Shown piece by piece: positions 12,421 through 41,400 of a stretch of 64,000 nt of DNA. The stretch lies in the NCBI GenBank assembly GCA_021613535.1, contig CP075492.1, positions 18,972,001-19,036,000 of the forward strand. Reading direction: 5' to 3'. Under the pieces are notes generated by a model. It was given only the letters and a program-made list of their open reading frames with translations, was not told the DNA's origin and made no database searches. This DNA is from Adineta vaga. Its lineage: Eukaryota; Animalia; Rotifera. The first letter of the stretch is position 1. Every line of letters begins with the position of its first letter. The position numbers and the translations under genes are program-made.

Positions 12421-12635
12421 ATCGTCCACTAAAATAGACAAACCATTAGAGGCATATCATCGTTTATCTATGGTAGATGATCAATAAGTGATCCTTATTG
12501 AAATATACTGTTGGTTATATTTTTTTGGTTATTGAAACAGACCAAATTAAGACTTATTATTTCTTTAGATTTCTCCTCCCCAAAAATCGATTTCAACCCA
12601 GAACATATTCAAATGGTATGATATTTTCGGACTGC

Positions 12636-15102: not shown

Positions 15103-17995
15103 ATGTCTTTTACAGTAGACCAAAATTCAGTACGTTTCAAAGCTCTTGATGATGTAATTGTTATTTGGATTGACGATTATATGATTTCTAATGATATATA
15201 TCAAGAATTGCGAAAATCAGATTTTTCTGTATTATACACAATTCATTCGAATGATTTCGATATTTATCTTAATTATATCACTGAAAATTTAGTAGCTGGT
15301 GCCGTTGTTTCACTTATTGTTCATAGTCGATTTATTGATCAATTACTTTCTATTTCTTTACCGAATATTATTAATATTTATGCATTGGGTAATAAATATT
15401 ACTTTCGATGGAAAAATACTAAAGTTCGTGACGTCTTTAATCAACATGATCCGAAATATATTTCGAAAGTATTACGTGAAGATTTTGAAATTTATTTCAA
15501 TCGACAATGGTCTACTGGTATAAGTTTCTTTCAAAGAAATACTGAAATACAAAGAAATTTCGGTGAATTAAGTCATCAAAATGCTCAATTTATGTGGTAT
15601 CAATTACTTATTAAGATTCTTACACAAATGCCCCCAAGCGTAATGAGTAAAGACGATCTATTACAACAGAGTTTTCTGAATTACAAAGAAGATATTAATG
15701 TTAGAGATTTTAAGACTTATGAAAGTCATATGTATGAATTTAAACGAAAGTATATTCCTGAAAAAGCTCTTGAATATTTTACACGTGATAGTTTTTTTTA
15801 TCGTTTAATGAATCAAGCATGTCGAACATCAAATATTGATCTTATGTTTTCATATCGTTGTCTTATTCGTGATATATTTATTCAACTTGAAAAACTTTAT
15901 ATTGATCAAAAACAAAATTGTCAAAAACCATTTACGGTTTATCGAGGAACAACAATAACAAAAGAAGAATTAGAATTGTTACAAAGAAATATTGGAAATT
16001 TAATTTCACGTCATCAATTTCTTTCAACAAGTAAAGACAATAATGTTGCATCAATGTATGCAGGTGATATGTCAACAACATCAGATGAAGAATTACATAT
16101 TCTTGAAGAAATTTTTATTAATCCAATGAATTGTAAAACAGTATTCTATGCTGATGTATCGGAATACAGCTATTTCAAAGATGAAGGTGAAATTCTATTA
16201 TCTATTGGTAGTGTATTTCGTGTAAAATCAATATCTGAAATACGGGTAAGTATAATGATATTATATTTATTGAAAGAAAATGTAATTGATCATTTTATAT
16301 ATAGAAGGGAATTTTATATAAAGTTCAATTGGAATTAGTTGACAATGATGAGAAAATGATTGAAGAACTTCATCAATATTTAGAATTGAATATTGAAAAT
16401 GAATCTACTCTATTAACTTTGTCTTCTTTTTTACTCTGGATGGGCAAATATGATAAAGCTCGATATTATTGGTATGTTATATATTTATTTTTGTCGTATA
16501 GACGAAAGAAGAATTTCTTCTGAGATCTTTTATATTTAGTGATATCTTACTGACTAAATTAGCTGAAGATGATCCTGATCGTTCAGTAATTTGTACTCAA
16601 ATTGGTTATATTTGTCAAAAAATGGGAAAATTTGATGAAGCTCTCGAATATTTACATCAATCAATTGAAAAATTATCGAATAAACAGAAAATTCTAGAGC
16701 TTTCATGTGCATATAATGATCGAGGATTGATATATAAATGTTCTGGAGATTTTGTTAAGGCTCAGAATGATATAAACAAAGCTTTAGAATTACGATCCAA
16801 TGAAGAGAATTTTACAGAAATAGAACGTAAATCATTGCCTGTATTTCTTTCACATACACATGAAAATCTTGGAATATTATACAAAGATGATAGTAAGTAT
16901 GATCTTGCTCTACATCATTTACACAAAGCACTTGATTTACGACAAAAATCCTTGCCTAAAAATCATTATTGGATTGCACAAACATACAATAATTTATCTC
17001 TCGTATATACAACTATTGGTAATCATAAAATGACAATAGAATGTATAGAGAAAGCAATTGAAATTCAACGACAATCATTACCAGAAAATCATCCACATTT
17101 AGCTACAATGTATCAAACACAAGGAAATGCGTATTATCGACAAGGTGAATATAATGAAGCATTGGTCAATTTCCAACATGCTTATGATATATATCAATCA
17201 ATGCCATATTGTGATCCACTCATGATAGCTGCTGCAGCTTCTAATATAGGTTCAACACTTAATGTTACCGGTAATTATACAGCAGCATATCCAAAATTTG
17301 AAGAAGCACTCAATACTCAACGACGTTTTGCACCTAAACATCCAAATATAATATTTGCACTGAACAATATGGCAATGGTGTGTAGTAACATGAAAGATAT
17401 GAATGCTTTTATGAATTATTCTCAGGAAGCTCTTCGTATGTGTCGTGAAATTATTGGTGAATATCATGAAAATACAGCTATTACATATCTTATTGTTGCT
17501 CAAAGATTAAACGTTGAACAATATGATCAGGCTATGAATTATTTTAATCATGTACTCGATATTTATATCCAACATCTTCGTTTACCATATCATAATAATG
17601 TCATTGGTTGCTACATTCAAATGGGTATAATGGAACGAAAACGAGGTCATTTTGAAGAAGCACATCAAAATTTTAATTTAGCAAATGAAGCTTATCATTG
17701 TTCGTCATTACCTCAGCAACATTCTCTTCTAACAAAATTATACACACAAATAGCGCTGACACATATCGAACAAGATCAAGTTGAAGCAGCATTGCATGCA
17801 TATGAACAAGCAATCAAATATACTCCTGAAAATTCTCATGAATTACCGAAAATTCTTGAAGATATTGAAGTATTACATGAAAGATACAATATTAGAAATT
17901 CACGTTTTCAAAACAGTAACATTTTTTACATAGGAATTGTGACAACAATTGGTGTGATGAGCGTAATATTGTTTAAAATTTTTCGTAAAACTTAA
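15103..17995 (+). CDS. ADP-ribosyltransferase (R-S-E type) + TPR repeat protein with C-terminal TM, 3 exons
   Basis: FTRDSFFYRLMNQACR, VYRG, FLSTS, DEGEILL. Introns at ~16246-16304 and ~16472-16538. About 10 TPR repeats and a C-terminal hydrophobic helix. Confidence 0.9.
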
Positions 17996-19376: not shown

Positions 19377-20721
19377 TGATTATTTCACAATTTTTAAATA
19401 ACATTCACGCTCCCCAATTTATTAAAACTTTTCTTTTTATAATAAAAACGAAAAACAACATGACGAGGAAGAAAGAGAATAGAAAGGTAAATAGGTGATC
19501 GACACGTGTAGAACAGAAGTTTTTTCTAAGCTGAATCTTACTGAAAATATGTAAATGAGATCAATCATTTTGAGAATGAATAATTAGCAGCAATGACACT
19601 AGTATAATATGCGCATGTCTTTTGTTTGCTTCTCAAAAAATTTCATTTTCTTCACTATAAACGATCAAGAACGTTCCATCAGGCTCCTTCATAGATGTTC
19701 TCATAATACGTCACACTGTAGCAGTCGACGGTTCTTGGCAATCAAACAAACCTTCTTCTTTATTCCTTTTTCTATGAAAGAACGGATTATAATAATATAT
19801 ATGTGAATAATTGCATCAATCGCAGAGAAAAAATTACGAAATTTACCTGTTCGAAAGTATCCCGCGTTCTCTTCCGCGTAAGAAAAAATTCAAATTATAA
19901 ATTCACTGACAACTACACCCTATCACCATCAAGATTTAACTGGTTGACTTGGTCATCATGTTGTAATCGAACGGGATATTCAATTATTTAGAGAAACATT
20001 TCTCGTACATAATAACACAAATACTACGTACTTCTGAATAAAATTAATTATATTTGCATAAACGATACGAGATAAAGAATTGAAAGTATTCCATCATCCT
20101 TTGTTACAATTGATTTATCGGGAACAAAACAAAGAAAAAACTAATATACTATTACCGTGAAAATCAACTAACAATCATTATTTTATATTTGTCTTTAGAA
20201 AGTACATTTTTATTTGATTTTTGTCGATAGATAAATAAAAAATTTTTTATGATCGCAGTAAATTTCAATTATATTCATTTCTTTAACGTAAAAATAATGG
20301 GTGAGTGTCTTCTATTTTGGCTCTAGTACTATATTGCCATCTGTATTACTTGTACATTGCAACAACAGATGGGTCGTGAATATAATCAAATGAATTATCT
20401 TACAAATAGTTCTCCAATTGATCAATCAAATCTTGATTCTAAATTACTTTGTATTGCACAATGTACACAACAGATTTCAACATGTAATATCGTTGTATTT
20501 GATCGCCAAGCATCACCTCCGTGCAGAGATGCGCAAATACAAATACAACTTGTATTCTACCTTTTCTATATATATATTATTTTCAAGTATATATTCTTTT
20601 CAAACCATATATATTTACCTCAAAAGATGCTTCCTTATAACTGCGTCCTCACAGGTTTACCCATTTTTCGTTCAGTATACTACAACTATTATTCATGTAC
20701 TGGCCCTACCTTATGCTGTGA

Positions 20722-21086
20722 AGCTAGAATCGGTTGTCATGTATTGTCATGTATCGACCCTACTTTCCCCTTTTCAGCTAGAATCGGTTGTCTTGTATTG
20801 TCATGTATTGACCCTACTTTCCCCTTTTCAGCTAGAATCGGTTACCTTGTATTCTCATGTATTGTCATGTATTGACCTTACTTTCCCCTTTTCAGCTAGA
20901 ATCGGTTGTCATGTATTGACCCTACTTTCCCCTTTTCAGCTAGAATCGGTTACCTTGTATTCTCATGTATTGTCATGTATTGACCTTACTTTCCCCTTTT
21001 CAGCTAGAATCGGTTGTCATGTATTGACCCTACTTTCCCCTTTTCAGCTAGAATCGGTTGTCATGTATTGTCATGTATTGTCATGC
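20722..21086 (+). repeat. Left subterminal tandem array of the KDZ element
   Basis: Repeated core GACCCTACTTTCCCCTTTTCAGCTAGAATCGGTTG with variable TCATGTATTG spacers (~6-7 copies). Confidence 0.95.
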
Positions 21087-21360
21087 ACTCACTTTATACA
21101 GACCTAATATCTAGTATCGGCTAATTTGCTGTGATATGTCTCTTTATCAACCAAGCAGCAATGACAAAAATTCATGAGGTGCACTTTTTAGTTCTTGTTA
21201 AGTATCTAGTTCTACCTTTTCTCATTATTCCACTTTTCCCTCACAGGATGAATAGCGAAATTGAGGATCAGTATTTTCAGTCGAATGCTTCAGTAAGTTT
21301 TTTAAAATACCTACAAATCGTTCTATTGAAAATCATTGATTACTCACTTGTTTTTCCCAT

Positions 21361-23283
21361 CTTGCTCGATCTAGATCAGGATACAATTCGTATGATGATC
21401 CTATTATTTTTATTTTTTCTCGTCTTGCTCGATCTAGATCAGAATACACTTCGTATGATGATCCTATTATTTTTATTTTTTACCCTCTTGCTCGATCTAG
21501 ATCAGGATACAATTCGTATGATGATCATATTATTTTTATTTTTTACCCTCTTGCTCGATCTAGATCAGGATACAATTCGTATGATGATCATATTATTTTT
21601 ATTTTTTACCCTCTTGCTCGATCTAGATCAGGATACAATTCGTATGATGATCCTATTATTTTTATTTTTTACCCTCTTGCTCGATCTAGATCAGGATACA
21701 ATTCGTATGATGATCCTATTATTTTTATTTTTTACCCTCTTGCTCGATCTAGATCAGGATACAATTCGTATGATGATCCTATTATTTTTATTTTTTACCC
21801 TCTTGCTCGATCTAGATCAGGATACAATTCGTATGATGATCATATTATTTTTATTTTTTACCCTCTTGCTCGATCTAGATCAGGATACAATTCGTATGAT
21901 GATCCTATTATTTTTATTTTTTACCCTCTTGCTCGATCTAGATCAGGATACAATTCGTATGATGATCCTATTATTTTTATTTTTTACCCTCTTGCTCGAT
22001 CTAGATCAGGATACAATTCGTATGATGATCCTATTATTTTTATTTTTTACCCTCTTGCTCGATCTAGATCAGGATACAATTCGTATGATGATCATATTAT
22101 TTTTATTTTTTACCCTCTTGCTCGATCTAGATCAGGATACAATTCGTATGATGATCCTATTATTTTTATTTTTTACCCTCTTGCTCGATCTAGATCAGGA
22201 TACAATTCGTATGATGATCCTATTATTTTTATTTTTTACCCTCTTGCTCGATCTAGATCAGGATACAATTCGTATGATGATCCTATTATTTTTATTTTTT
22301 ACCCTCTTGCTCGATCTAGATCAGGATACAATTCGTATGATGATCCTATTATTTTTATTTTTTACCCTCTTGCTCGATCTAGATCAGGATATAATTCGTA
22401 TGATGATCCTATTATTTTTATTTTTTACCCTCTTGCTCGATCTAGATCAGGATACAATTCGTATGATGATCATATTATTTTTATTTTTTCTCCTCTTGCT
22501 CGATCTAGATCAGAATACAATTCGTATGATGATCCTATTATTTTTATTTTTTACCCTCTTGCTCGATCTAGATCAGGATACAATTCGTATGATGATCATA
22601 TTATTTTTATTTTTTACCCTCTTGCTCGATCTAGATCAGGATACAATTCGTATGATGATCCTATTATTTTTATTTTTTACCCTCTTGCTCGATCTAGATC
22701 AGGATACAATTCGTATGATGATCATATTATTTTTATTTTTTACCCTCTTGCTCGATCTAGATCAGGATACAATTCGTATGATGATCATATTATTTTTATT
22801 TTTTACCCTCTTGCTCGATCTAGATCAGGATACAATTCGTATGATGATCATATTATTTTTATTTTTTACCCTCTTGCTCGATCTAGATCAGAATACAATT
22901 CGTATGATGATCCTATTATTTTTATTTTTTACCCTCTTGCTCGATCTAGATCAGGATACAATTCGTATGATGATCCTATTATTTTTATTTTTTACCCTCT
23001 TGCTCGATCTAGATCAGGATATAATTCGTATGATGATCCTATTATTTTTATTTTTTTCCTCTTGCTCGATCTAGATCAGGATACAATTCGGATGATCTTA
23101 TTATTTTTATTTTTTACCCTCTTGCTCGATCTAGATCAGGATATAATTCGTATAATGATCATATCATTTTTATTTTTTACCCTCTTGCTCGATCTAGATC
23201 AGGATATAATTCGTATGATGATCATATTATTTTTATTTTTTTCCATCTTCCTCGATCTAGATCAGGATACAATTCGTATGATC
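21361..23283 (+). repeat. 63-bp tandem array, ~30 near-identical copies
   Basis: Unit CTCTTGCTCGATCTAGATCAGGATACAATTCGTATGATGATCCTATTATTTTTATTTTTTACC, containing the palindrome GATCTAGATC. Confidence 0.97.
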
Positions 23284-23731
23284 TTTCCGACAGTGGAATG
23301 TTATATAAAACGGACAAATGATGGAAAGTTGCATAGTATTTTGATTCTTTTAATCGGTTTTTTTTGTAGCTTGCTAATTCGGAAGCAGTTGAACAAGCCA
23401 TAGACGCAATGTGGAAAATACTGACTAAATAGGTGTGATTTTTTTAAAATTTAATCGGTAAATGAACTTTATGTTGATGAGAAAAGTGAAGCAGTGTTCA
23501 AAGTTGGGTGGTCTGTTAGCGACCCCTATGGTTTAAATGGTTGATTAGCGGTTATTGGATAGACGAGGGATGATTGGAAATGACGGATTCTTCTGTGTTA
23601 ATCGTTTATTTTTGGTTACGAATATGTGGTCAAGTTATACTGTACCTCAAGGTACCCATTATATTCATTACATTTTACCAAGTGCTAAGTTATACTATAA
23701 ACTTCGTACGTTATTGGACGATGTAATAGTA

Positions 23732-25090
23732 ATGAAAGAAAATGGACAAAAGTCGATCATTATTGGTGTTGAACATGAAAATCGGAAACGCTTATTTTTA
23801 AACGTAACATTCGATGAATTATCGAAGGTATTACAAAGCTTAGATGTATCGAAACGAACACTATACGAAGTTTTGTGTGAAAAAAAAAATTGTAAATTAT
23901 ACTTTGATGTTGATATTCATATAACAAATTCGTTGACAATGAACGTTGAAGAATCATTGTTAATTCTACAAAATCTTTTCCATTGTTTTATTTTGGATTG
24001 GACTAATAAATACACGAAAAAATCAACCGGAATTGGGGATCATTTTCTTGTTTTATGTGCAACAACAGAAGCAAAATACAGCTATCATTTAATATACACA
24101 AACACAGAAATTAGATTTCATTCACAACAAATTGTATTTAAATTTATTAAAATGTTATTACAGCATTGTTCATATTTTATATTATCGCATCCATGTCATG
24201 AACATCTCGTACAACCAAATAGTATGAATGCAGCAAATGATCTCGATGGCTGTATTAAATGCTTACAAATGATTTTAATGCATATAGATTTTTGTAGTTG
24301 TATAATACCTGAAACAAAAGTAACCTGTAAAAACTTTCAAAAACTTCTTTTCAAAAGTAATCTTATTTTTTTTGTACTTCACATATATAGTTTTATTTTA
24401 TTCTTGCTAGATTCAGATGGTTTATATCAATGGATTTTTGATCTTAATGTTTATAGTAATAATCAACAATTTAGATTATATCAATCGACGAAATTTGGAA
24501 AACACAATCCTTTGTTACCAACATCAGATTTTCCTTTTAATCCATGCAATAAACAATACGATATATCTATGAACAATGATGGCATTGATCATTCGATGCT
24601 TAAACATTCATTAATAGCTTATATATCAGATGATTCAAATATTGTAGTATTATCTTATAATGATAATAAATGGGTAGCGATGAATGAACATGATAATTCT
24701 ATAACTGAATTAACTCCTAGTTACAATTTCGCGGATTCAAGCACAATAGCTAAATTTACAATTCAAAATAACTTAATTCAAGCAACAGCGACAAAATGCA
24801 AACAAGATTTATCTAACAATGAAGAATATTATAAAACTTTTATTTTCAAATTAATGAAAGAAACATATCATACGAACGGTCACATACAATCGTGTCAAAA
24901 GGGTAGCAAAAATCGATCTATATTATTTTTTAATATTGGCGGTGATTTTCGATTTTGTGAACGATTACAACGTCATCACAAGTCAAATCAAACTTGCATC
25001 ATCATCGATACATTTACAAATAATTACCAGATTAAATGTAAAGATCCAGACTGTAAAAACTTCAAACTGCCATGGAAAAAGATATTTTAA
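23732..25090 (+). CDS. PrimPol-like archaeo-eukaryotic primase-polymerase with C-terminal UL52-type zinc finger (~434 aa; in-frame intron 24357-24410)
   Basis: LYEVL..KNCKLYFDVD (motif I, DxD), KYSYHLI (motif II, SxH), IFDLNVYSNNQQFRLYQSTKFGK (motif III), RFCERLQRHHKSN...YQIKCKDPDC (C-H-C-C zinc finger). All parallel eukaryotic PrimPol motifs. Confidence 0.9.
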   Translation: MKENGQKSIIIGVEHENRKRLFLNVTFDELSKVLQSLDVSKRTLYEVLCEKKNCKLYFDVDIHITNSLTMNVEESLLILQNLFHCFILDWTNKYTKKSTGIGDHFLVLCATTEAKYSYHLIYTNTEIRFHSQQIVFKFIKMLLQHCSYFILSHPCHEHLVQPNSMNAANDLDGCIKCLQMILMHIDFCSCIIPETKVTCKNFQKLLFKSNLIFFVLHIYSFILFLLDSDGLYQWIFDLNVYSNNQQFRLYQSTKFGKHNPLLPTSDFPFNPCNKQYDISMNNDGIDHSMLKHSLIAYISDDSNIVVLSYNDNKWVAMNEHDNSITELTPSYNFADSSTIAKFTIQNNLIQATATKCKQDLSNNEEYYKTFIFKLMKETYHTNGHIQSCQKGSKNRSILFFNIGGDFRFCERLQRHHKSNQTCIIIDTFTNNYQIKCKDPDCKNFKLPWKKIF

Positions 25091-25815
25091 CTTCTCTTAA
25101 ATAAATATTGAACTATTGCTCATAATGATACAGAAGAATTTTTGAATATTTCAAACTTTGCTTTGAAAATAACTTCGAACTTTTAAACGTTATCTATTTC
25201 ATCTCGTGATCATTGAACCATGTATCATAAAAAAACACATGAGATACTGAATGCATTGAAGAAAATTCATAACAATCTGGGAGATTAGAAATCATATTAG
25301 ACTAATTAAATCATTTCGAAAAATAAAAAAATTTAATCAACTTTCATCCAAAGAAAATAATATAAAAATAGAATATTTGTCAGAAAAAAATTGCTCCTAG
25401 TCCAATAAATTTGACACTATACTATGAATCCGTATCATGTAAATCAGAATTTTAGATATAATTTTCTACCGTGGTAATATGATAGATGTATCTTGAGTTT
25501 CAAATCACATCTATCTATTTAATTTTAGCGTATTTCGGTTAGTGGCTCCATCTTGTGATCATGTTATTTTTTTCTAATATTGATCTGTCTACTATTAAAT
25601 TTAAAAAATTATTTAGTGAAGAATGATAATAGATATATAAGTTACATCTTAATTGTATGTAAGCTGTAATCATATTGTCTATGTAACTTCATACGTTTGC
25701 ACTCACCGTTCGTTAATCGAGTCGACAAAAAGAAGAAAGAATTTTTAAACGAACATTTTATATATTTTTTTCAATTTGATGTTTCAAACCTGTATCATAA
25801 TTTAATATTTTTTAG

Positions 25816-28800
25816 GAAAAGAAATCGATCTGGACCGTTCACAACCATCACTTACTCACATCTTTGCTGTTCGTGGCATGTTAGGAAAGAAAATGCAAAC
25901 ATTTGATGCCGATGCATCTGAATACATTCAACCTTATTTAAATGCTTTGAACTCAAATAAACCACATGTTGGCATTAGTTCCCGTGCAATTACATCTTAC
26001 GAACAAGCTGTTGAACGTCGTGGTGCCGAAATGATTGTGCGTATTGCATCAAACATACAATATATGAAAAATATTCTTGAAATTATTCATGAAGTTAATA
26101 ATATCGATTTTCATGAATGTAATCAAAATTTTATTGACCAGGTCGAAGCTATAATTCAATTAAAATATGGATTATCAACAAACAATTTACCAAAAAATAC
26201 TGCACTGGCAACGAATACACAATCGAAAATGATCATTACCAAACAAACATGTGAAGAATCAGTATCCATATTTCTTAGTTTATTGATGCCGCAACATTTT
26301 ACACTGATGAATTCTCGTATTAACAATGATGTAAAAGAAACACAATCTGAATTAACCTTACAAACAAAAATTGTAAAACTTACATATCGTGTCTTCCATA
26401 AAACAACATTACATGGTAACGACGGTATATTGAAAAATATTGACAAAGATTTAATCAGTTATTTATTGGAACGTATGGTTCGTCGTGGTATTTTAAAGAA
26501 AGGATATTATTTAAAATCCGAACATTCTGTTAAATATGAATCATATTTGAAACATTTACCATCAAATGAATTGGAACAACAAGAATTAGTATTTGAATTA
26601 AATAAGCATCACGTATCATGGGAAGAATATCAAGAGATTTACGAAAATAGCTATATTTTACCAGCTAATACATCTTTGACGGCCGATGGTTTTCGAGAAT
26701 TGCAAAATCAATATCCTTATGGTGTTATTACAAACGATACTCAAATTCGTCAATCACCACTTATTTCAAATCCTTCAAATTCTTTACAAGAATCGACAAC
26801 AGGTAATTAAGTAAAGCATATTAGTGTTCTTCAGAAAGGTTTGATATTATTTTGTTATAAAGAAATGCTTGAAAATTTTTGCCTTCACTTTTTACAGAAT
26901 TTCTTTTTTTTTAGCAATCCATCATCTTCATACGTTGAATCCGTCATCGAGTGATGCACCAGATAACCAACAAACAACTAATACTGCAATACAAGATGAT
27001 CCATCTTTAAATTTAAGTAAGATGTTTCAAATTTTCGCTCTTGTAGCTTACCGCCTATTTCATTTCACAGGCAACATCACAACTGGTGATATTTCAGTTT
27101 TACAAAATTATCCAGAGTTGTCCGAAATTTTACAACTGAATACTGGTAGGAACTTTAAATACACCCTCTAGTTTAATAATTATTGTAAAAACTGTATTTC
27201 ATTTCAGGAGATCGAGAAATCAATTGTCAACGATCACTAACAAGTACTGTAAATCGATCCAATAACCAATCAAAACAAACAAAAAGTAAGGACTTTTTAT
27301 TGTATAAAAATAATGTAATCGAAAATATTCATTTTCTACTTATTTACTATAATTTCATCATAGTTGGACATCATGCTATTTTGGAACCAAAAAACGATGA
27401 TTCTTCGATCAGTGAAATGGAAGTACAACAACAAGGTGATATTTTTAAACAAGGTAAATACTACATTATTACTTTTTTATTTTCATAATTTTTTCGCTCT
27501 TTTCTCTTTTTGCGTCTTATAGAATCAGCATCATTGGATAATTTACAAAATATTATTGATACATCAGTCAATCATGAAAATTCAACACCTGCATACAAAG
27601 AAACTGGTAGGCTGAAAAGAAAGAAATCGTCATCAATTGCAATATATTATTTATATGTCCTTTTTTGTCTTATTTTGTGTATGTATTCTAGAAAAAAATC
27701 GATCAACTAGTCAAGATTCGTCGATTTTACAAGATGAAACAGATGTTCAACAAAATCATGCATCAAAAACCTTATCATTAGCTGTGCAGCATCAATCTGA
27801 AATGATCAATCAAGATAATCTTCCTTTACATGGTATTCCGCTTATCTATTTTTCTTTAAAATATGTCGCTCTTATTTTTGTATTAACCAACAAAATTCTT
27901 TTTTTTCTTGTTTAGAAATCGAAACTTATAAGCAATTCAAAACTCATGTTCATATTACATCAACACCTGATGAATTCTTTTCTAATAGTATAGTTATATA
28001 TTGTATTTCAATACACTTTTTTCATCTCTCATTAAGGTAATCAACCAAATCATATTACAATACCGGCTAGCGGACAGTGCAATGAAAAATCGGATCATGT
28101 ACACAAGGACTGTTCAGCATCAACAAATGGAAGTCAAATAAGTGAAATATCATCAAAGGAAAACTTAAGCCGTGAAGGTATTTTCAGATATACTTATAAT
28201 ATGTATTACTTAGCAAATATTTTTGATTTTAGACAGCAACAAATCCAAAAATCTTGAAGGTTCATCATCGTCTTCCAAAAATGCATTGGATGCATTTGAT
28301 CCAGTACGAGCATTAGAAGATCCAAAAACTATACCACGACGAATTATGTTAAAATGCAAACAAATGCTTTTATTCGGCTCACCAATCATAACAAAAACGA
28401 GTTGGAATCGTCGATTTGGCGGCGATTCCGATTTATGTCAATCAGCCGTTCAACTACTATTCCATGCCAAACTGTTGTTGGAAGGGCAATTTACAACTAC
28501 TGCGACCAAGTCTTATCTCAGCTGGATTAAAATATTACCAAATGATTCCACCAATATAGCAATTACATTGAATTTTCAACAAAAAAAATTAGATATATTT
28601 GGTATAACATGGGAACAGTATGCGTCATCGTTCAAAAAAATCGAATTTGGTCATAACAACGCTACAACATTAATATCAAAAGAAGGTGCTGAAATTCTCC
28701 GATCCAAACCATACCAGGATGTGGGTTTCATCATGGACGAATCTATCGTATTAACAAAGAAGAGCAAAAGTAATGCGTCGAATATTTTTGAAAAAATGTA

Positions 28801-29702
28801 AATCTTTTGTCTTTATAGATTCAGAAACATTGAACATACCGGAACCAGTACGCAATCCGACCATTAATGAATCAGAATCATCAGTTTCGATGATGTCAGT
28901 TGGTAAGTTTTCTGTATAAGCATTTTCATTTGTATGACTGTTTTTTGTAATATTTAGAATATGCTGAACCTGATCTAACATTAGATAATGTCGCCAATAT
29001 TACATTAGTTCAAGATGATTCAGGTAATACTTAGATTTATCGACTAATTTCATTTCAATACACTGTATGATGGATAGTTTATCGGAATTTTATTATTTTA
29101 TAAGCAAAGTTGCTTCAGTGAGAAAATTATCTTATAAAAAGCATCTAAAAAGAAACAATATACTTCCTTTTGGAGCTGATTTGTATAAGAATTTTAAAAT
29201 TATAGATTCAAATTCAAGTGCTGCAAATTTGGCTAGTACTGCTGTGATTCCATCTCAAGCTGCTGCAACTAGTCCATCCTCTGATGAAATTCAAACTATT
29301 CATTTGAACTCAGTCACCACAGGTAACAAGCTTTAACATTTCTTTATTTTTTATATGTTTAGAAAAACGACGAAGTTTTCAAAATAGGGTAGTTTGAATT
29401 CACATGAATTGTACAATCTATCGTTGAATTATCTGAGTACTTGATATCTAATCATTCACATGTTTGACATTATTCGAGATACTTAAATACAGAGTTCAGT
29501 ATATAAATATTATTAATTTCAACTTGCCGTTTGAAATATTTGATTATAGCAGTCAACAACGTATTATTAAAATGATTGTTTTTATATTATAGATATCTCA
29601 TCGAATGCCTCAGCATCAACGAATTCATCAACACCAAAACGAACAAGACGTCTTATAAGTCCAATCAGAACAAGGTCAAAAAGTCGACGTATTGAAAATT
29701 AA
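25816..29702 (+). CDS. Multi-exon transposon gene: possible DUF3987/AAA+-like helicase C-terminal region, two copies of a winged-helix-like domain, S/T/Q-rich micro-exon linkers; 5' part not found
   Basis: Large exon 25816-26802, many short GT-AG exons, a second globular exon ~28233-28770, and a basic C-terminal tail PKRTRRLISPIRTRSKSRR ending in TAA at 29700-29702. The domain call is tentative. Confidence 0.6.
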
Positions 29703-30391
29703 AATTATCTTTGTTTGATGTATTAATTTCTGCTTTGTTTGTTTTGTCTGTGTGTTAGCCATTTATTTCTGCTTCATCTTGTGTTTTATTGTGAACTATT
29801 CTTGTTTTTTTTTGTTTACTTTTTGTTATACTTGATACTCTTGTGTTCTTATAACTGTTTTTCTTGTTTTCCTATTTACGTGTAGGTCTAGTAATTGAAA
29901 ATTATTTAATCAAGTTAAGAGATTTAATGCTAGTCTTTATTGTTTATCTTGTTCTTATATTGCATATCATATGCAATTCATATCATCTTAATGAACATTC
30001 GTATGATCTTCTAGAAAATAACTCTTTTTTTTCGTTTTCTGTTTTGTTAAATAACTGACATGCTTAGTAATTATTTGTTCGAACAGATACATTTTCTCGT
30101 TTGCTTCATTTTTTGTTTGTTATACATATACTGCTTGCATCATATTGAATAAATATGAAATTGAACTGTGATAATGAAATTGTAATTGTCATCAATAAGG
30201 AGAAAGTGAAATTTTATTATACATTGAGTAAAACGATTAGCTCTTTATAATTTCAACATTTGACTACAAAATGAGTGACGAATTACATAATATTTTTTAG
30301 CTATATGTGATAAAAATCTGGAAATTTGTGATTTATTTCTTTATAGATATATTTATACTGCATAATTTTATTTTATTTTATCGACATTATC

Positions 30392-32705
30392 ATGTCATCT
30401 AACTATTTACTGACAGATAATGAAGAAATTTACATCATTACATTACATAGACACTTCAAAATCAATGTTCTGCAATTGATAAATGATCTGAATAATCGTA
30501 TGGATCATGATATACCAACTCGAGTGACCGATATTAAAATTATGGTTAATACAATGTTTAATACTGATTTATCCGTTACAACAGTAAATGAAATAATTAA
30601 TCGATTAAATAATGGAGAGTTGAAACAGCTCTTTCACTCCTATGATGTTGATCAGTTGCTAACTAATTATATTGCAAGTTCAATATCTGATACCAACGCA
30701 ACATTAATTTGTCTTAAACCATTTACAAATACATGTCTAACCTGTAAACAGGAACTTCAAATTTCATTTAATCAATATGTCACAATTTATAATATGGGAT
30801 CGATCATTAAAGGTGGTGTTTATTATTCTTCTTGCAACAATTGTAGAATGAAATATTATCCAAATTATTATGAACATATCACTATTGGTGCAAAATTTGT
30901 CACACCAGCATCAATCTATAACCAAAAATATATTTACTTTGGTGGAAAGAAAGTTTACTCTACAGAATTGTTGATACATTTTACATCGGCGTTTCTCAGA
31001 CAATATTCTGGTTTTGAAAACTTTCAGAATTCATACAATTTAACCATCAAAAAATATATTACTTTATCTGCAAATACCCATACAGTAAGCATTTATGACA
31101 TCAGAAACAAAAAATATTTAGAAATTTCTCACAGTTTTGAAATAACAGAAAAACAATGAAACGGATGTCATATATATTTCATCTATTTTAATGTTGTTGT
31201 ATATTTTAGTCGAATGAAATAATGTCGGAAATTAGTCGTGAATATTTTTCAAATATCTGGTTCATTTATCAATTATGTTTATTTACCTTCTTTATGAATG
31301 ATACTTTGCAACTTGAAATACCAAAGTTACTCGATGATTTATCAATTTATAAATTTTTTGATGTTAACTATGATCAATGGTACAGTGATTTTGTAAACCA
31401 TTGGGCAATACACCATCGAACCCATCCATGTGATTCTACAAAACAATTCCAAGGTGCTGATTGCATGACGGCATTTGTTGTAGACGGAATGCAAAAAGTG
31501 GCAAGAGTAATCTGTAATAACAAAAACAAAATGCTTGTAACCAGTGAGTTTCCTGATGGCATCTACGTCGGATGTGGCAATACGCCCAAATCAAAATCTG
31601 GTTTATGTGAACGCTGTAAAGAAGAAGAAATAATACACGATAATGAAACATACTTGAAAACCAATGATGACAAAGGTATCTATGATGATCCAACAACTGG
31701 CTGCAATGTATCAAGAGAAGATCGGTACGTAAAAAATGTTAATCACTGAATCTGTTTCATTATCATTCAGTTTAAGTTGCATACAATTGATTCAGAAAAC
31801 ATCAAGAGGAAATTTACAGATCTACTAACATTTATCAATATGATTTTTTTATTATTATTATTTAAGTACAGAGAATTAGAAATATGATAATTATACTCAT
31901 ATTATTTCTGAAATAAAAACTAGATTATTCTTGGTAAATTGATTTTATTCCATCATTTAAGAAATTCTGTACTGATGAGCTTGACAATGATGATTACAAA
32001 GATATAGATGTGATATTATTCTTTGAATTGAAATATAAAATAATACAGTTTGATCATTCGTACGGATTTAATTCTAATAATTATTTTACTTTTAGTTTCG
32101 TCGATATGGAGAAGAAAATTTCACAAGGTATTATATATACATTATCTCCATGTGGAATAATCATTGGCTTTGATGAAGTATATCATTCAGAATCCTGTTA
32201 TATAGCTTTGTGGCATTTATTCAGAATGATTAGTCTAGTTGACAATCAACATCATCAATTTTTACCAAATATACTGATTTATAATAATGCTTGCAGTTTA
32301 TATACTTATTTTTGGAATCGTTATGACAAGATTGAGATTAATCGACGTATTTTACAAACACCATCATCAAATTTAATTTCCCGATGTTTATTTTTTATTG
32401 ATCGTTTTCATCAACAAAATCACAAACGACCAATGTGTCAAAAAGAAAGAAACATCGACTATGCATATAAAGGAGCAATCAAAATCAATACTGAAGCTGC
32501 TGAACAACGAAACAGTATATTGAAGCAATATCAAAATGCCTTATCCTCATATTCTTCCAAAAAGATTCGTATTACTTACTTAATATTATTTCATTTAATG
32601 AATGCCGAGCGTAACATGTGTGATGGTCAATTCGAATACAATCGAAATTATGCTCAAGGCAACTTTTCCGCCAATGACAATTCATTCAATACAATTTCCG
32701 ATTAA
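30392..32705 (+). CDS. KDZ-type transposase with CxC5/CxC6-like cysteine clusters (3 exons, ~605 aa)
   Basis: Exons 30392-31084, 31210-31724 and 32096-32705 splice in frame. Motifs: CLTC...CNNCRMKYYPNYY; H..H.C...C..AFVVDGMQKVARVIC...GCGNTP....LCERC; SPCGIIIGFDEVYHSES; LIYNNAC; IDRFHQQNH...C; INTEAAEQRN. Confidence 0.85.
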
Positions 32706-33329
32706 CACAACTACATCGTTTTATTTTCTCGTCATCTACACAATAAAATTCATTATCTCAACAAAATTCTTGTAGTTTGTTCTACATCATCAGACTTTTA
32801 CTTTTTTGTCTTTCTTTTTCTTGTGATTTATTATTCATATCGTCACAATAAAACAATTCTAAAAATCTTTACACAAAATCAATATATCCGAAAACACGCA
32901 ACTACAAAAATTAACACTTATTTTAAAGTAAATCGAGTTTTTTCTAAAGAAAAATGCATATGAGCAATTTTCTAACCTATCTAAACTACAACAACACTCC
33001 GAGTCACAAAAGATTCACTCGTACCATTATATCTTCTTTAACATTCATAATTTTGGTCATGTTGGTTTCAAACATATTCTTTCATAGTAGTACCAATTAC
33101 TAAGACGACACTCATCATAATATTCAAAAACAAACTTCCATCATGAGAAGCATAAATTCCGCTTAATACCAAAACTAGAACCGCCACAGGCGCGTATATA
33201 AAAGTATACCTTAACTACTTCAAACTTTTACCTCCAAAATCGTGTCAATACACTACACAATAGCACATGATGGTTAAAGTTCACCAGTTCTAAACTACAC
33301 ACCCACAAGTATAGACAGTGTATGCAAAC

Positions 33330-33665
33330 ACATGAGAATACATGACAACCGATTCTAGCTGAAAAGGGGAAAGTAGGGTCAATACATGAGAATACATGAC
33401 AACCGATTCTAGCTGAAAAGGGGAAAGTAGGGTCAATACATGGCAATACAAGGCAATACATGAGAATACAAGACAACCGATTCTAGCTGAAAAGGGGAAA
33501 GTAGGGTCAATACATGGCAATACAAGGCAATACATGAGAATACAAGACAACCGATTCTAGCTGAAAAGGGGAAAGTAGGGTCAATACATGGCAATACAAG
33601 GCAATACATGAGAATACAAGACAACCGATTCTAGCTGAAAAGGGGAAAGTAGGGTCAATACATGA
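33330..33665 (-). repeat. Right subterminal tandem array of the KDZ element (inverted relative to the left array)
   Basis: Five copies of CAACCGATTCTAGCTGAAAAGGGGAAAGTAGGGTCAATAC, the reverse complement of the left core. Confidence 0.95.
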
Positions 33666-35316
33666 TAGTGTATAAAAGCTATAAAAAGTAAAGTACAAGT
33701 TGTATTTGTATTTGCGCAGCCCTCCCTCCGTGTAAGATGTTTAATGAAATATTCATAATGGGAAACCTTGTCGTATCGGTTAGTGGTATTGTTGTGGACT
33801 TTAGTCAGTCCAATATCAATGAAGGTATATTTACAAAAATACAATTGATTTCAGTTCGAAAAGTTTACTATCATACACTGAAATACTAGAAGATTTTTAA
33901 CAGATAGAATATCTTATTATATAATAATTATGAAGAATAATTTCTATGTTTTATTATTTAAAATATAGATTGTGGAAATGGTAGTACATTTATAACATTT
34001 GATGATTTAACAGCTGGAACAGCTGTACCGAATGGTTATAGTAATATTGATTGGAATAATGCAGTTGTTTATAACAGTTTTCATGCAGTAAATGGATATA
34101 CAACAGGTACTGTCAGTAAAAATTGTACATCGATGAACAGTGGTGGCAATCCAATGACAATGACACGTACCGGCAGTACTCTTTTTACTTTACATTCTGC
34201 TGCAATTGCTGCAGCATGGTACGATAATTTACAATTAAACGTAGTTGGCTATCGTTCAAATTCAACTATTGCAAATTATACTTATACACTTCAAGTGTTC
34301 TCAGTGTCCAATATCAAATTCATTGGATATTCTAATTTAGATGAAGTTATATTTTCAACATCAAATGGAACGCAAAATCCATCTGTATCAGGTATTGGTA
34401 CACACTATGCAATGGATAATCTTTGCATTAGTGTTATATGAATATTAAGATTATCAAAAGAACCATTCAATAATTTTCTCATTGTTTGTGAACATATTCT
34501 TTTTATTTGAACTACAATAAAGTATTTATAAATCAAACTTCAATCGAAATAATGGCTAGATTTAATCCAATGAATGGTTAAAGGAACAATCAAAATGAAT
34601 TCTATCATTTTTATATAAATTATGTTATTTTGTCCTGAATGACATCAGAAAAACTAAAAAAAAATAGTTTTATGCAACACTTGGTAATGCATTTTACACA
34701 TCATTTTTCTTTCTATTTTCATCTCACTGTTGATAATGTGTTTTCACGCCATCCATACCGTGGTTTCTAATGATATCTAAATCGCCAACAATTATCTTTT
34801 CAAATAGTATTATTTCTATTATTGAACTATAAATAAATGAGAACAAACATAGAGACGATGTTAATTATTTTTTCCCGTCGATCGAGGTCATAATTGTTCA
34901 GAAATTTTTTAAAATATGACATTGCTCAAAACAAAATATCCACATATGGAGAACATTACATTCAGCACACTTATAACTTATTTTAATTTCTCAAAAGATT
35001 ATACAGAGAGAATTAGCGACTAACAAAAAATAATGATTTGTAAACATGCGGTCGCTTGTGTCAGAAAAAATAACATTAAATTCGTATTCTTTGATCCCAA
35101 TTACGTCTCAGTAGAGTTTTATGGAAAATTTTAACTTTTAGTTCAAATAATTTTTGACCAATTAAAAAAGTGCAGAGAGATGAGCAAGGTAGTAGACAAT
35201 TTGTGTTTGCACGACTCTTCTCTACGTCGAGAGAATTATTTCATTTTGTGGCATATATAAAAACAAGATTAGTTGCTCACTTATTTATAGTTTTGTAATA
35301 GACAATAAAAATTCTA

Positions 35317-36273: not shown

Positions 36274-38437
36274 ACGACCAAAACAAATGGAATGCGTTTA
36301 TCAACCATAAGAAAATCGAAGAATGAAATAATCCCTCCATTCCTCCCCCCCCCCCTCAAAACTCTACTTATAGCTTATTTATATAACTTACTTTCATTTT
36401 AACGAATGCTTTTATTGTAAAATTAGTATAGCCACTCTAACAATAATGTATACCACATTCTTACTTATCCTTTTATGTATAAATATAGAATATCATTAGA
36501 CATAGTCAACTTGAGAGTGTGAGTAGATGAAGAAAATAACGGCATATCCTCATTATCTGAAATTCTTTTATCCATCTCGGCTTCTTTCATGAAAAGAACG
36601 TTGTTGGTTTAGTCACACTAGTTATTGATTAGATTGTTTTCAACATTTTCTGCAATTTGGTAAAACATTCATTATTATCTATGAATAATATGATTTATAA
36701 CCTCGTATAACCAGTTACTTTGTCAAATAATTTCAATGATATTTTCTATTCATTTTTTCTATGTAGAAATCTACAGATTTTTGTTGCAATTTTTAAAGCA
36801 TGTTTAATATACAAAATTTCTCGTACTTATCAAACATCAATATGATGTCTGACAAAGAATTGAAGAAAAATATTAATTTGACAGATGAGTTCTATTTCTT
36901 TTTTATGTATTTAGCTGTGATGAAAAACGACAGTAATGATGTAGATGAAGATGGAGACGAGAGAAAGTTGGAAAGAATCAAAAGAAAATCAACTCGTTTG
37001 TTCGTTCTGTTACTTGTTCTTTACAATATTATTTTAAAAAGTAACTAGGTGAAGTTTCTTCCTACGCGATAGCAAAACAACAGAAATAACATTCGAAAAA
37101 TAGAGAAAAAAAGAATAAGAGTGATCTTTCTTTTCATTCTAACAATATCAAAATGGACGAATTGAACTCGATACCATCATCCAATATTCGTCAATCACGA
37201 CAACGCATCGCTCAAAATTATCTTCTTCTCTGGATAGATGCTAGCATCGATGAAGAAAGCAAAGACTACCAAGAAGTATTGGTTCAACTAAAGAATGTGA
37301 TTAACAATGTCAGCTTATGTACTCAACCGAATCAATGTATTGATTTGCCAGTCAAGTAGACAATGAACGTGTCTTCGTCATCATATCAGAATATTTGGGT
37401 CAATATTTAATTCCTGAAATTCATGATATATCACAACTAGATACAATTTACATCTTCTGTGACAATAAATCCAAACATCAAGAATGGATAAAAAACTGGA
37501 CAAAAATAAAAGGTATTCATACAAATATAAACGAGATTTGTCAAGGTTTACAAATGGCTGTTAAGCAATGTGATCAAGATCTTATAGCCATAAGTTTTGT
37601 TACAACAAATGAAATGGCTTCAACTGATAATTTAAATCAACTCGAACCAACATTTATGTATACACAAATATTTAAAGATATTCTTCTTGATATCGATTAT
37701 GGTGATAATGCAATCAAAGATTTAGCAGCTTGTTGTCGAGAAGTTTTTTCTGATAATTCAATTGAATTACAAGTAATTAATGAATTTGAACATGATTATA
37801 TTCCAGAAAAAGCCATATGGTGGTATACACGTGAATGTTTCACCTATAAAATGCTCAATCAAGCACTTCGAACTTTGAATGCCGATATAATCATAAACAT
37901 GGGCTTCTTTCTACGTGATGTACATCAACAGATTCAAGAGCTGTACGAAAAACAAGTTAGTACTTATGATGGCAAATCGTTTATAGTTTATCAAGGACAA
38001 GGTTTTACGAAACCAGACTTTAAAAAACTTGAACAAACAAAAGGTGGATTAATTTCCTTTAACAATTTCTTGTCTACAAGTACACATGAAAAAGTATCTC
38101 TCAGTTTCGCTCAAGATGCTTCAATAAAACCCGATATGGTGGGTATTCTCTTCATAATGTCTATTGATCCTTGTTCAACATCAACACCATTTGCTTCGAT
38201 TAGAGAGGAAAGTTATTTTAAGGGAGAAGATGAAATTCTCTTTTCAATGCATACTGTCTTTCGAGTGAATACAATTAAACAAATAAACAATAAGAATCAA
38301 CTTTATCAAGTTGAATTACAATTAACCTTAGATGATGATCTAGAATTACGACTACTTACCGATAGAATACGAGAAGAAGTTGATGGTACTGGATGGGAAG
38401 CATTAGCTGATTTATTACTTAAAATTGGTCAATTTAA

Positions 38438-41400
38438 GGGGGGGTCGCGACCCCCCAAGTACTCCTTTTTATGTATTCATTAGATAGACTATATTTTTTT
38501 ACGTATACTGTAAAATTTTTACGTCCGTCGGTTTAAATTTGACGGAGTTTTGTAATATGAGAAAACTTAGATTTTGGTCAAAAATTGATCTTCAGATTGG
38601 GTCCATGTTTTGCAAAATGTCAGTATAGAACAAAAGATAAATATAACTTCTCTTATATCAAAAGATAGAGAAAAAAATTCTCTATCGATTGCATATAGGC
38701 TTAAAATTATAACGAAAATTTTTTATAACAGATATGGTTAAAATACTGTATAAATTTATCATATTTTTCATGCTCCAAGCACTTTCAGTCGTGTTTTTAT
38801 GATTTTCTTTCGTTGAAATTTTTTTTAATTATTAACTGTTCGATAGAGAATTTCAAGCGCTACAATTTTTCTATTGACCATTTTCTTTGATTATTTTTCT
38901 TTAAAATAATAGAAATCAATTTTCGACTATCGATCAAGACATATATCTTGAAAAATCAAAAAAATTGAATAATTTAAATAAAAATAGGAAACATCCATAG
39001 AATTTCACTTTATTTTATTGCAATAGTAATCATTTATGTTATACACTAATACTTCGATCGAACAGCAAAGAAAAGTGTCTTTTATGAACTACTTTATCTT
39101 CCTCTAGTTTATAACAAACAATAGTATTAATTTTAAAATTATGAAAAAATGAGTCAGCATTGAGAAATTTCATTTATTCTTTTATTTTTTATATACAAAG
39201 TTCAACGTTTGTTTGACAATATAAAAAGAAATCAATTCTTTAGAACATACCGGCTCCATAATCCATTTCTTCATCTTCAGCCAACTGTGACTGAAGTCGT
39301 TGCTGTTGTTTTTGTTTTGTAATAGTGCCCTTTTGTTGTATATTGCTTTCCGCTTTTTCAACACGTTTATTATCCTTTCCCAAAAGAGTCGTAAATAATT
39401 CTTCTGTAACAGATATGCCAACTTGATTAAAAAACTTGAGCAATCCGGAACGACCATGATTGAAAAAAATAGATGCAATTGCTGCAGTTCCTCGTACAGA
39501 TCGATATCCATGATATTTTGCTTTAGGTAAAATTGACCATAAAACAGAATTAATAGATTCATTAGCATTTTGAGTAGAACCACGTAGACATCGTCGTAAT
39601 AATAATGGATCAGTCAATTTGTTAATCATAGGAGTTAATATATCCAAAAATACCTATGAAACATGATGAAGATTTCAAAATATATAAAAACGAAATCACT
39701 TAGTCTAACTGTATCGAGTCGTTTTGGATCTTTGATTGGATCAGTTCTTTTTGCTAAAGGAAGATATTTATCTCTCTGATAAGTACACCAGGAGTCTGGC
39801 CCAGGAGGACAGAAATAATGTTGAAGTTCTCGATCAGGTTGTTTTATATTATGGATAAATGATGCACGACAATTTCTTTCCATAAGGTTTACTGCATCAT
39901 TTTCATTCATATCTAGAAGATAATCTGAACTGAGAACTATACAAAAATAATGTTTATACCTTTAATTAATTGACTAGTTTGTCGAATTGCCAGACCATAA
40001 TAATCCGACAGTTTCTGTTCCATATTATTGGTCATTCGACCAACGCTTCCACCATATGGTTTTCCATCAGCTAGACGTCTTCGAGTACGTCTTTTATTAT
40101 TAGTTGATAATGAAGGATGTTTTTGTTGATTTGATGCAGTTGATTGTTGCTCTTGTATTTCTTCATAGCCGGTATGTCGATTTTTCAGTGTCTTAAGATA
40201 ACTAGAAACTCGTTTTTTCACGTGGTTTATACAATCTTCTTTGGTGACGATAAGACTCTTGTATTCATCTGATGAGAAAAATGAAAAAGAAATATTATTG
40301 TTATAATGTTTATTTTCATTTAAAAAAACTATAGTTATACCATTTTGAGGAGATACTGAACGTGAAGGATCATTGAGTAGTATATTAGCATAGATATGCT
40401 TAACAGATTCATAAGCATTTGAATCTCCATCACTAATCATGTTCATGTATCGTACACCTAAATATCAATAATATAATGAACGTAAAATAGCCAATATTTT
40501 ACCTCTTTCAAGTGATCTTTCAAAAATGTTTTTTGCACCTTCTTTTTCCATACCACCTGCACTACCATCCCACGTTTTGGAACATCTTGATTGGTGATTT
40601 TTGTACTAGAAAAAGTGGATTGATATTGACGTTCGACAAATATTGTTGGTCTTACCCATTTTTTAAATTCAGAAGGTGGTGCTGTACGTTGTTTAGCTTC
40701 ACAAGCTTCACATCGTGTACTTAGAGTTTCGAAATCCAAACAAAACCCGGAATCTGCATCGATTAAAAAAACAACACCATACATTGAATTGTGACCACGT
40801 TTTTTCCATGTACCATCAAGAGAAATCGTAAGATTCAAAATATTTTTCGAATCACATTTAACGTCATTACGAATCTCATCGATCAGTGTCAGGAAATCTT
40901 CATGAGCAAAAGCATATAATTGATCATATCTAAATTAAACTGTATAATACAGAGTAAAAACAATAGACTACTTACAAATTATGGACTTGTTTATAGAAAT
41001 TTGAACGATGTGGTACATTAACACCTAACATTGATAGTACAAATTGAGTAGCATCATAACCGATTCCACTTATTGCACTTGCTGCATATAACCGTTGATT
41101 AGGTTCTTGTATTTGATGCAGAGATTGAGGTGGAAAATTAGTAAAGTCGGTTATTTTGTTACAAATGGAACATTTCAATCCATTTTGGTGAAATAATCCA
41201 AAGTTCTTTCCATCATCAATAATTAGCTCAAGTCGAGCACCAGGACAGATATGAGCTGTATCAATGCATTGTTTCATATGATTGATATCGAAAATTTGAC
41301 TGGATCGTTCGACAGTTTCATGATCCTTAGCACTATAAAAGATCGACATGTGAATATTATTTTTACTAGAAAAAGAATATCTTACCTTTCAATAGATGGT

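Follow-up and report, generated by a model that had tools for sequence, protein, structure and literature searches.

A KDZ (Zisupton-like) DNA transposon with an intact PrimPol-type primase-polymerase gene in the bdelloid rotifer Adineta vaga

A 64,000-nucleotide stretch of the genome of the bdelloid rotifer Adineta vaga (assembly GCA_021613535.1, contig CP075492.1, positions 18,972,001 to 19,036,000 of the forward strand; hereafter the window) contains a recently inserted KDZ (Zisupton-like) DNA transposon. The transposon is a single element of 13,201 bp (window positions 20524-33724) with three genes, all of them on the + strand: an intact gene for a PrimPol-type primase-polymerase, a companion gene related to Rotaria proteins with a DUF3987 domain, and a gene for a KDZ-type transposase. 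The exons of spliced genes were searched singly, and the database models P0172, P0225, and P0228 were used for whole genes. The features of the element and its insertion site are as follows, all positions being those of the window.

20357-20523, + strand: left part of the interrupted flanking open reading frame (ORF); the right part is 33733-33889, in the same phase
20516-20523: left copy of the target-site duplication (TSD), 8 bp, read directly from the sequence and the same as 33725-33732
20524-20554, + strand: left terminal inverted repeat (TIR), 31 bp, inner 24 bp perfect, from sequence reading and a window search
20694-21085, + strand: left subterminal array, units of 44-64 bp, six perfect 22-bp core motifs
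21351-23282, + strand: internal tandem array, 63-bp unit, 30.7 copies at 97% identity
23624-25090, + strand: PrimPol-type primase-polymerase gene, intact, 488 codons read through
24956-25054, + strand: UL52-like Cys-His-Cys-Cys zinc finger of PrimPol (Pfam PF03121, 16.5 bits, below the cut-off of 21)
25806-29702, + strand: companion gene related to Rotaria DUF3987 proteins, multi-exon
28253-28798: conserved C-terminal domain of the companion gene
29634-29696: basic tail of the companion gene
30392-32705, + strand: KDZ-type transposase gene, three exons, a to c (~30392-31156, 31222-31724, 32096-32705)
30710-31045, + strand: CxC5 cysteine cluster in exon a (Pfam PF18718, 31.9 bits, E = 1.6e-7, cut-off 26.9)
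32262-32540, + strand: KDZ transposase domain match in exon c (Pfam PF18758, 16.4-19.7 bits, below the cut-off of 26.6)
33307-33695, - strand: right subterminal array, units of 54-74 bp, five perfect 22-bp core motifs, inverted
33694-33724, - strand: right TIR, 31 bp, from sequence reading and a window search
33725-33732: right copy of the TSD, 8 bp, abutting the element end

Boundaries, insertion site and transposase

A preliminary description of this DNA had proposed an element bounded by TIRs and an exact 8-bp TSD, and our analysis bears this out. The same octamer, CCTCCGTG, stands at both ends, and the TIRs share a perfect 24-bp inner core (20531-20554 and 33694-33717; the outer bases match at 4/7 positions), which occurs at only these two sites in the window, where the chance expectation is 0. 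The left and right subterminal arrays are inverted copies of one another, and all occurrences of their 22-bp core in the window fall within them, six in the left array (+ strand) and five in the right one (- strand). The length of the TSD is the value that had been put forward for the Zisupton group, in agreement with published data, according to which TSDs are 8 bp long in Zisupton and Dileera and 7 bp long in Kyakuja (PMC12730594).

The claim that the element sits in the middle of a host exon holds as far as the frame is concerned. The flanking frame reads '...ASPP' at the left end and 'PPCKMF...' at the right, with the phase kept over the 8-bp duplication, and the element together with one TSD measures 13,209 bp, a multiple of three. 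Since the phase is kept over this distance, the insertion breaks an open frame; however, no family could be assigned to the interrupted ORF, and the host exon is therefore putative.

The 63-bp array was likewise recovered as first described, and is confined to the element, all 31 occurrences of the core of its unit in the window lying within the array itself. The 10-bp palindrome GATCTAGATC is perfect and present in every unit. Of the six reading frames, one is open across most of the array (21131-23074), which is probably due to chance, because the unit corresponds to exactly 21 codons. Just ahead of the array lies a short ATG-started open stretch with a GTAAGT donor-like end (21249-21298), and transcripts of the element may use this stretch as a 5' exon.

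The transposase had been described as being of the CxC5/CxC6 KDZ type. Of this assignment, the CxC5 cluster stands, with a score above the cut-off, and the KDZ domain gives a sub-cut-off match (E = 8e-4 to 8e-3), as it also does in the A. vaga models and in a Rotaria model, while CxC6 was not found. All three exons are free of internal stops, and their boundaries were placed at GT-AG sites and in accordance with the database models. For exon c, 20 relatives with 53-76% identity were found on rotifer-type contigs. In a comparison with 21 relatives, the window copy deviates at three of the 80 near-invariant columns, among them one of the nine near-invariant acidic columns. Because a conserved acidic column differs, the transposase of the window copy may be impaired, a point that bears on its activity and not on its ancestry.

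The element has at least one close counterpart. The A. vaga model I4U23_016868, annotated as a hypothetical protein, matches the final transposase exon of the window without a difference, and a second protein, I4U23_016625, differs from it at 1/267 residues; both are encoded on one chromosome. These near-identical models imply at least two near-identical copies, which fits, and suggests, recent movement or duplication.

PrimPol and its companion gene

The PrimPol gene of the element is intact, as had been proposed, and belongs to the archaeo-eukaryotic primase (AEP) type with a zinc finger. It matches the structures of human PrimPol (5l2x/7jk1) in two stretches with E = 2.9e-8, and none of the 25 positions at which at least 85% of 32 PrimPols agree has changed in it. 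The catalytic motifs are all present, namely motif I in the form Asp-x-Asp, motif II as Ser-x-His (S153 and H155), and motif III with D273, and so are R284 and K290. Although the zinc finger scores below the Pfam cut-off, its ligands, C445, H452, C472, and C477, fall on columns that are conserved in the 32-PrimPol comparison in all four cases. A GT-AG stretch of 54 nt (24357-24410) is in frame in the window gene, whereas it is spliced out in the Rotaria models. The protein is collinear from the first to the last residue with a 488-residue protein from a Logan assembly (59% identity), and Rotaria proteins under the name 'DNA-directed primase/polymerase' align collinearly with it as well (52% identity).

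A homologue search of 1.84 billion representative proteins returned relatives in three tiers. The first, which we refer to as clade A, shares at least 50% identity with the window PrimPol and comes from Rotaria, Adineta steineri, and further assemblies. The second, clade B, shares approximately 30% identity and comes from Rotaria and metagenomes. The third consists of canonical PrimPols, including those of a mealybug, a yew, a spider, and the acanthocephalan Pomphorhynchus, all with E = 1e-19 or weaker. A neighbour-joining tree, drawn without support values, joins clade A to clade B as its sister and places both apart from the canonical PrimPols; the window PrimPol pairs with the Logan protein inside clade A. 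As judged from these sequence comparisons, the window PrimPol is thus a member of a rotifer-specific clade. The preliminary description had proposed to place the gene against the host's own PrimPol; the protein collection returned no A. vaga PrimPol of 281-894 residues.

Among the clade A sequences, the Rotaria magnacalcarata models P0005 and P0216-P0222 are mostly 251-386 residues long, as against 452-488 residues elsewhere, and motif I is altered in P0005, which suggests that these models represent decaying PrimPol copies.

In rotifers, PrimPol also occurs in association with OB folds. In clade A, the end of an RPA-like OB fold lies directly upstream of PrimPol in Rotaria sp. Silwood2 (model P0004) and in one metagenome locus, L001. 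In the latter, the end of the OB-fold domain (L001:3-86) contains one in-frame stop and is located approximately 0.3 kb upstream of the clade A PrimPol (L001:400-1464), a layout that agrees with the fused model P0004. In clade B, PrimPol lies 3' of RPA-like OB-fold exons (Pfam PF16900/PF01336), as in the following metagenome contigs.

L003:6443-10942: clade B OB-fold/PrimPol locus
L004:292-4792: clade B OB-fold/PrimPol locus
L006:206-4613: clade B OB-fold/PrimPol locus

The OB-fold-then-PrimPol order of clade B is also seen in Rotaria gene models (P0008), and because order and strand are the same in the Rotaria models and the metagenome contigs, clade B looks like a conserved OB-fold/PrimPol gene. 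In a further contig, the pieces of a clade B PrimPol are split by approximately 6 kb without a long ORF (L012:2032-10209), which could be a large intron or an insertion. No OB fold of this kind is present in the 64-kb window.

The gene order in the element is PrimPol, a spacer of approximately 0.7 kb, and then the companion gene on the same strand. In the companion gene, a helical region with winged-helix character is followed by a low-complexity linker, after which come a conserved C-terminal domain and a basic tail. A search with its first long exon yielded 26 relatives, which share 48-68% identity with it and come from A. steineri, Rotaria species, and the Logan, ENA, and JGI collections. 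None of the exons of this gene in the window, searched individually, matched a Pfam family, including PF13148. Full-length relatives were reached via cluster membership, in the form of the R. magnacalcarata models P0228 (1,107 residues) and P0232, which have an N-terminal DUF3987 domain at 34.6-36.7 bits (cut-off 27), followed by a long low-complexity linker, the conserved C-terminal domain, and the basic tail. Compared to these relatives, the window copy counts as having one truncation: it picks up the DUF3987 profile no earlier than the last quarter, at an exon preceded by a canonical splice acceptor. Even with permissive thresholds, the 64 kb yielded no counterpart of the ATPase part, that is, the N-terminal part of P0228/P0206.

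The DUF3987 family consists of predicted replicative helicases that are distant relatives of MCM and have a C-terminal winged helix; its members are typically encoded adjacent to AEP-type primases (PMC4889955, PMC5862659). The window order reproduces this primase-then-DUF3987 arrangement. The preliminary description had raised the possibility that the element also carries a helicase, and this stands for the full-length Rotaria relatives, which carry DUF3987, but not for the window copy, which is devoid of the ATPase part. We considered the companion gene of the window as a helicase in its own right and rejected this, given that it has no Pfam match, no P-loop, and no trace of the ATPase. The strict P-loop motif GxxxxGK[ST] is absent from the Rotaria proteins too, which have a variant loop at this place. 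The first exon was modelled (pLDDT 76.7) as a helical structure whose end resembles a winged helix; a fold search with this exon gave no significant match, the top names being winged-helix regulators, Orc1/Cdc6, and phage helicases and primases. The DUF3987 half of the Rotaria protein was modelled with a pLDDT of only 44. No match to the companion gene was found in PHROGs, NCBIfam, or phage genomes.

Possible origin and role of the PrimPol gene

The companion gene and the transposase have many bdelloid relatives. To see whether PrimPol is an equally regular part of the family, we compared the accession numbers and contig sizes of the PrimPol, KDZ, and companion-gene models of Rotaria and Adineta steineri. 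This adjacency test is low-powered: it also misses the link between the companion gene and KDZ in Rotaria, and exon queries are blind to models of more than 1.75 times the query length. One companion-gene model and one KDZ model were found on contigs of equal size, 9,865 bp. Within the low power of the test, no PrimPol could be placed adjacent to a KDZ or companion model, the 17-38-kb companion contigs of Rotaria included. Similarly, 16 metagenome PrimPol loci were free of KDZ and companion genes, but 15 of these belong to clade B, and the single clade A locus is 1.4 kb long. Scans of viral contigs and of bacterial and archaeal genome contigs revealed no comparable locus.

The evidence pulls in two directions. 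The OB fold found upstream of clade A PrimPol elsewhere and the truncation of the companion gene, which is on the side facing PrimPol, lean towards capture of the primase gene; the pairing of a primase with a helicase-family gene, the lack of a returned A. vaga PrimPol, and the repeat-like Rotaria copies lean towards a module. The reading that we favour, albeit tentatively and with slightly less than even confidence, is that PrimPol is a functional cargo gene of an Adineta-side lineage of the KDZ element. According to this model, the element would move by a cut-and-paste mechanism, in which the CxC5-KDZ transposase would bind the 31-bp TIRs as well as the five to six subterminal motifs per end, and cut the target with an 8-bp stagger. 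In bdelloids, the gene that regularly accompanies the family would be of the DUF3987 type, that is, of a predicted helicase family. PrimPol would most likely have been added from the rotifer-specific OB-fold/PrimPol gene family, either within the Adineta lineage or within a single sub-family of the element, and would have been kept intact because DNA synthesis benefits the element. A part for PrimPol in transposition is purely inferential; conceivable uses are filling of the 8-bp gaps, repriming, and repair synthesis at donor and target sites. As only PrimPol is fully intact in the window copy, the element would be a transposon with a DNA-synthesis accessory rather than a self-sufficient replicon.

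A less likely explanation is that PrimPol is a one-off passenger, one that is of no use to the element and undamaged only because its capture is so recent. Here, a piece of a host OB-fold/PrimPol gene and the satellite array would have been gained, and the 5' part of the companion gene lost, in one and the same rearrangement. This would account for the truncated companion gene abutting the PrimPol side and for the OB fold that accompanies clade A PrimPol elsewhere but is absent from the window; moreover, the known copies are just two, near-identical ones, and the changed acidic column of the transposase is compatible with a copy that is already decaying. However, PrimPol has retained its 25 conserved positions in full, as well as the small intron, at 52-59% identity to the nearest relatives; as no close donor came to light, the recency of the capture is not demonstrable. 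It would, in addition, have to be a coincidence that the primase has a functionally matching helicase-family gene as its neighbour.

At the other extreme, and in our judgement unlikely, PrimPol could be a constitutive replication module, as the preliminary description had proposed, the ancestral bdelloid element having carried a primase-polymerase, a DUF3987 helicase, and perhaps a DNA-binding OB-fold protein as a fixed set, which would copy or repair the DNA of the element during transposition; the window would then hold a decayed copy minus the ATPase part. Several of the observations in its favour also weigh against PrimPol as a cargo gene acquired on the Adineta side. The primase-then-DUF3987 order on one strand is the known pairing (PMC4889955), and a random capture would be unlikely to leave a primase directly ahead of a DUF3987 gene in the same orientation by coincidence. 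Because the protein collection returned no A. vaga PrimPol in the size range given above, a donor gene in the host is not in evidence. The clade A PrimPol of Rotaria is repeat-like, being found on contigs of approximately 15-25 kb, near the size of the element, in several assemblies and in truncated variants in R. magnacalcarata. A further point in favour of the module is that the divergence from the Rotaria and A. steineri relatives is similar for PrimPol (52-56% identity) and the companion gene (50-54% identity). On the other hand, no PrimPol model was placed beside the Rotaria companion or KDZ models, which counts for little given the power of the test, and the metagenome PrimPol loci lack both genes, with the reservation that nearly all are clade B. 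The primase is of the eukaryotic PrimPol type, unlike the usual prokaryotic partner of DUF3987, and a truncation on the PrimPol side of the companion gene is what would be expected if PrimPol came by rearrangement. It is equally doubtful that a bdelloid KDZ lineage regularly carries a DNA-synthesis set of primase-polymerase, DUF3987-type helicase, and perhaps an RPA-like OB-fold protein, of which the window copy would be a partly decayed representative; if true, such a lineage would provide the first case of a eukaryotic DNA transposon that is driven by a transposase and has a replication or gap-repair module based on an AEP.

All three of these explanations take the locus to be one element. 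That it is instead a nested or composite structure, or an assembly artefact, with unrelated genes between two ends, appears highly improbable. The 1.9-kb satellite array and the truncated gene do indicate a rearranged interior, but the ends match, the subterminal arrays mirror each other, the TSD is perfect, the flanking frame is in phase, and all genes are on a single strand. Furthermore, a search of the element for a second TIR or TSD pair bracketing the PrimPol segment, the signature of a nested insertion, found none.

Outside the element, the window contains, on either side, three genes or gene pairs that encode NAD:arginine ADP-ribosyltransferase and TPR domains (15103-17995, 37395-38483, and 44571-46946), the last of which lies in a stretch of higher G+C content (0.34-0.40 at 44-50 kb as opposed to approximately 0.30 elsewhere). 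A pentapeptide-repeat ORF (7768-9015) and a SET-domain ORF (11170-12441) are found on the - strand.

Comparison with known systems

The preliminary description had been aware of no described element that combines KDZ and an AEP primase. Our literature search agrees with this, as it found no paper linking KDZ/Zisupton elements with a primase, nor rotifers with PrimPol; as far as the searched literature goes, primase cargo is newly seen in the KDZ transposon superfamily. The element resembles Zisupton and Dileera (Böhne 2012; Iyer 2014; PMC12730594) in its 8-bp TSD, its TIRs, the CxC cluster ahead of a KDZ-like region, and the presence of extra cargo. It differs from them in its host, a bdelloid rotifer, in the score of its KDZ domain, which is under the Pfam cut-off, and in the nature of the cargo, which is a primase-polymerase and a DUF3987-family gene and not TET/JBP or similar.

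With human PrimPol (PDB 5l2x/7jk1), the window PrimPol shares the AEP motifs I-III and the UL52-like zinc finger. In contrast to eukaryotic PrimPols in general, it belongs to a rotifer-only clade, far from the canonical enzymes including the acanthocephalan one, is located inside a transposon, and has motif I in the Asp-x-Asp form. The pairs of primase and DUF3987 genes in phages and prokaryotic mobile elements (PMC4889955, PMC5862659) are similar in that the primase is directly upstream and a winged-helix-like region follows DUF3987. In the window, however, both the host and the PrimPol type are eukaryotic, the ATPase core is absent, and there is no match in PHROGs, NCBIfam, or phage genomes.

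Polintons, casposons, and Polinton-like viruses (PMC3671162, PMC4642659, PMC11296320) are comparable as integrating elements that have TIRs and their own DNA-synthesis genes. Some Polinton-like viruses even have an AEP fused to a helicase, but these have capsid genes and other integrases (PMC4642659, PMC11296320). The window element, unlike Polintons and casposons, would integrate by a KDZ-type transposase. No capsid gene, packaging ATPase, or tyrosine recombinase was found in it, and its long open segments gave no Pfam match to a protein-primed family B polymerase, an rve integrase, or Cas1.

Cut-and-paste transposons are thought to depend on host enzymes for gap filling and break repair, while the elements that bring their own polymerase use a protein-primed family B polymerase together with other integrases. 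A KDZ element with a primase-polymerase and a helicase-family gene would stand between the 'simple' transposons and the self-synthesising elements and viruses. DUF3987 has so far been regarded as belonging to phages and bacteria, and a gene of this family in an animal transposon agrees with the unusual history of gene acquisition in bdelloids. Even if the PrimPol of the element is a capture, the rotifer-specific PrimPol clades, one of which is joined to RPA-like OB folds, are noteworthy in their own right.

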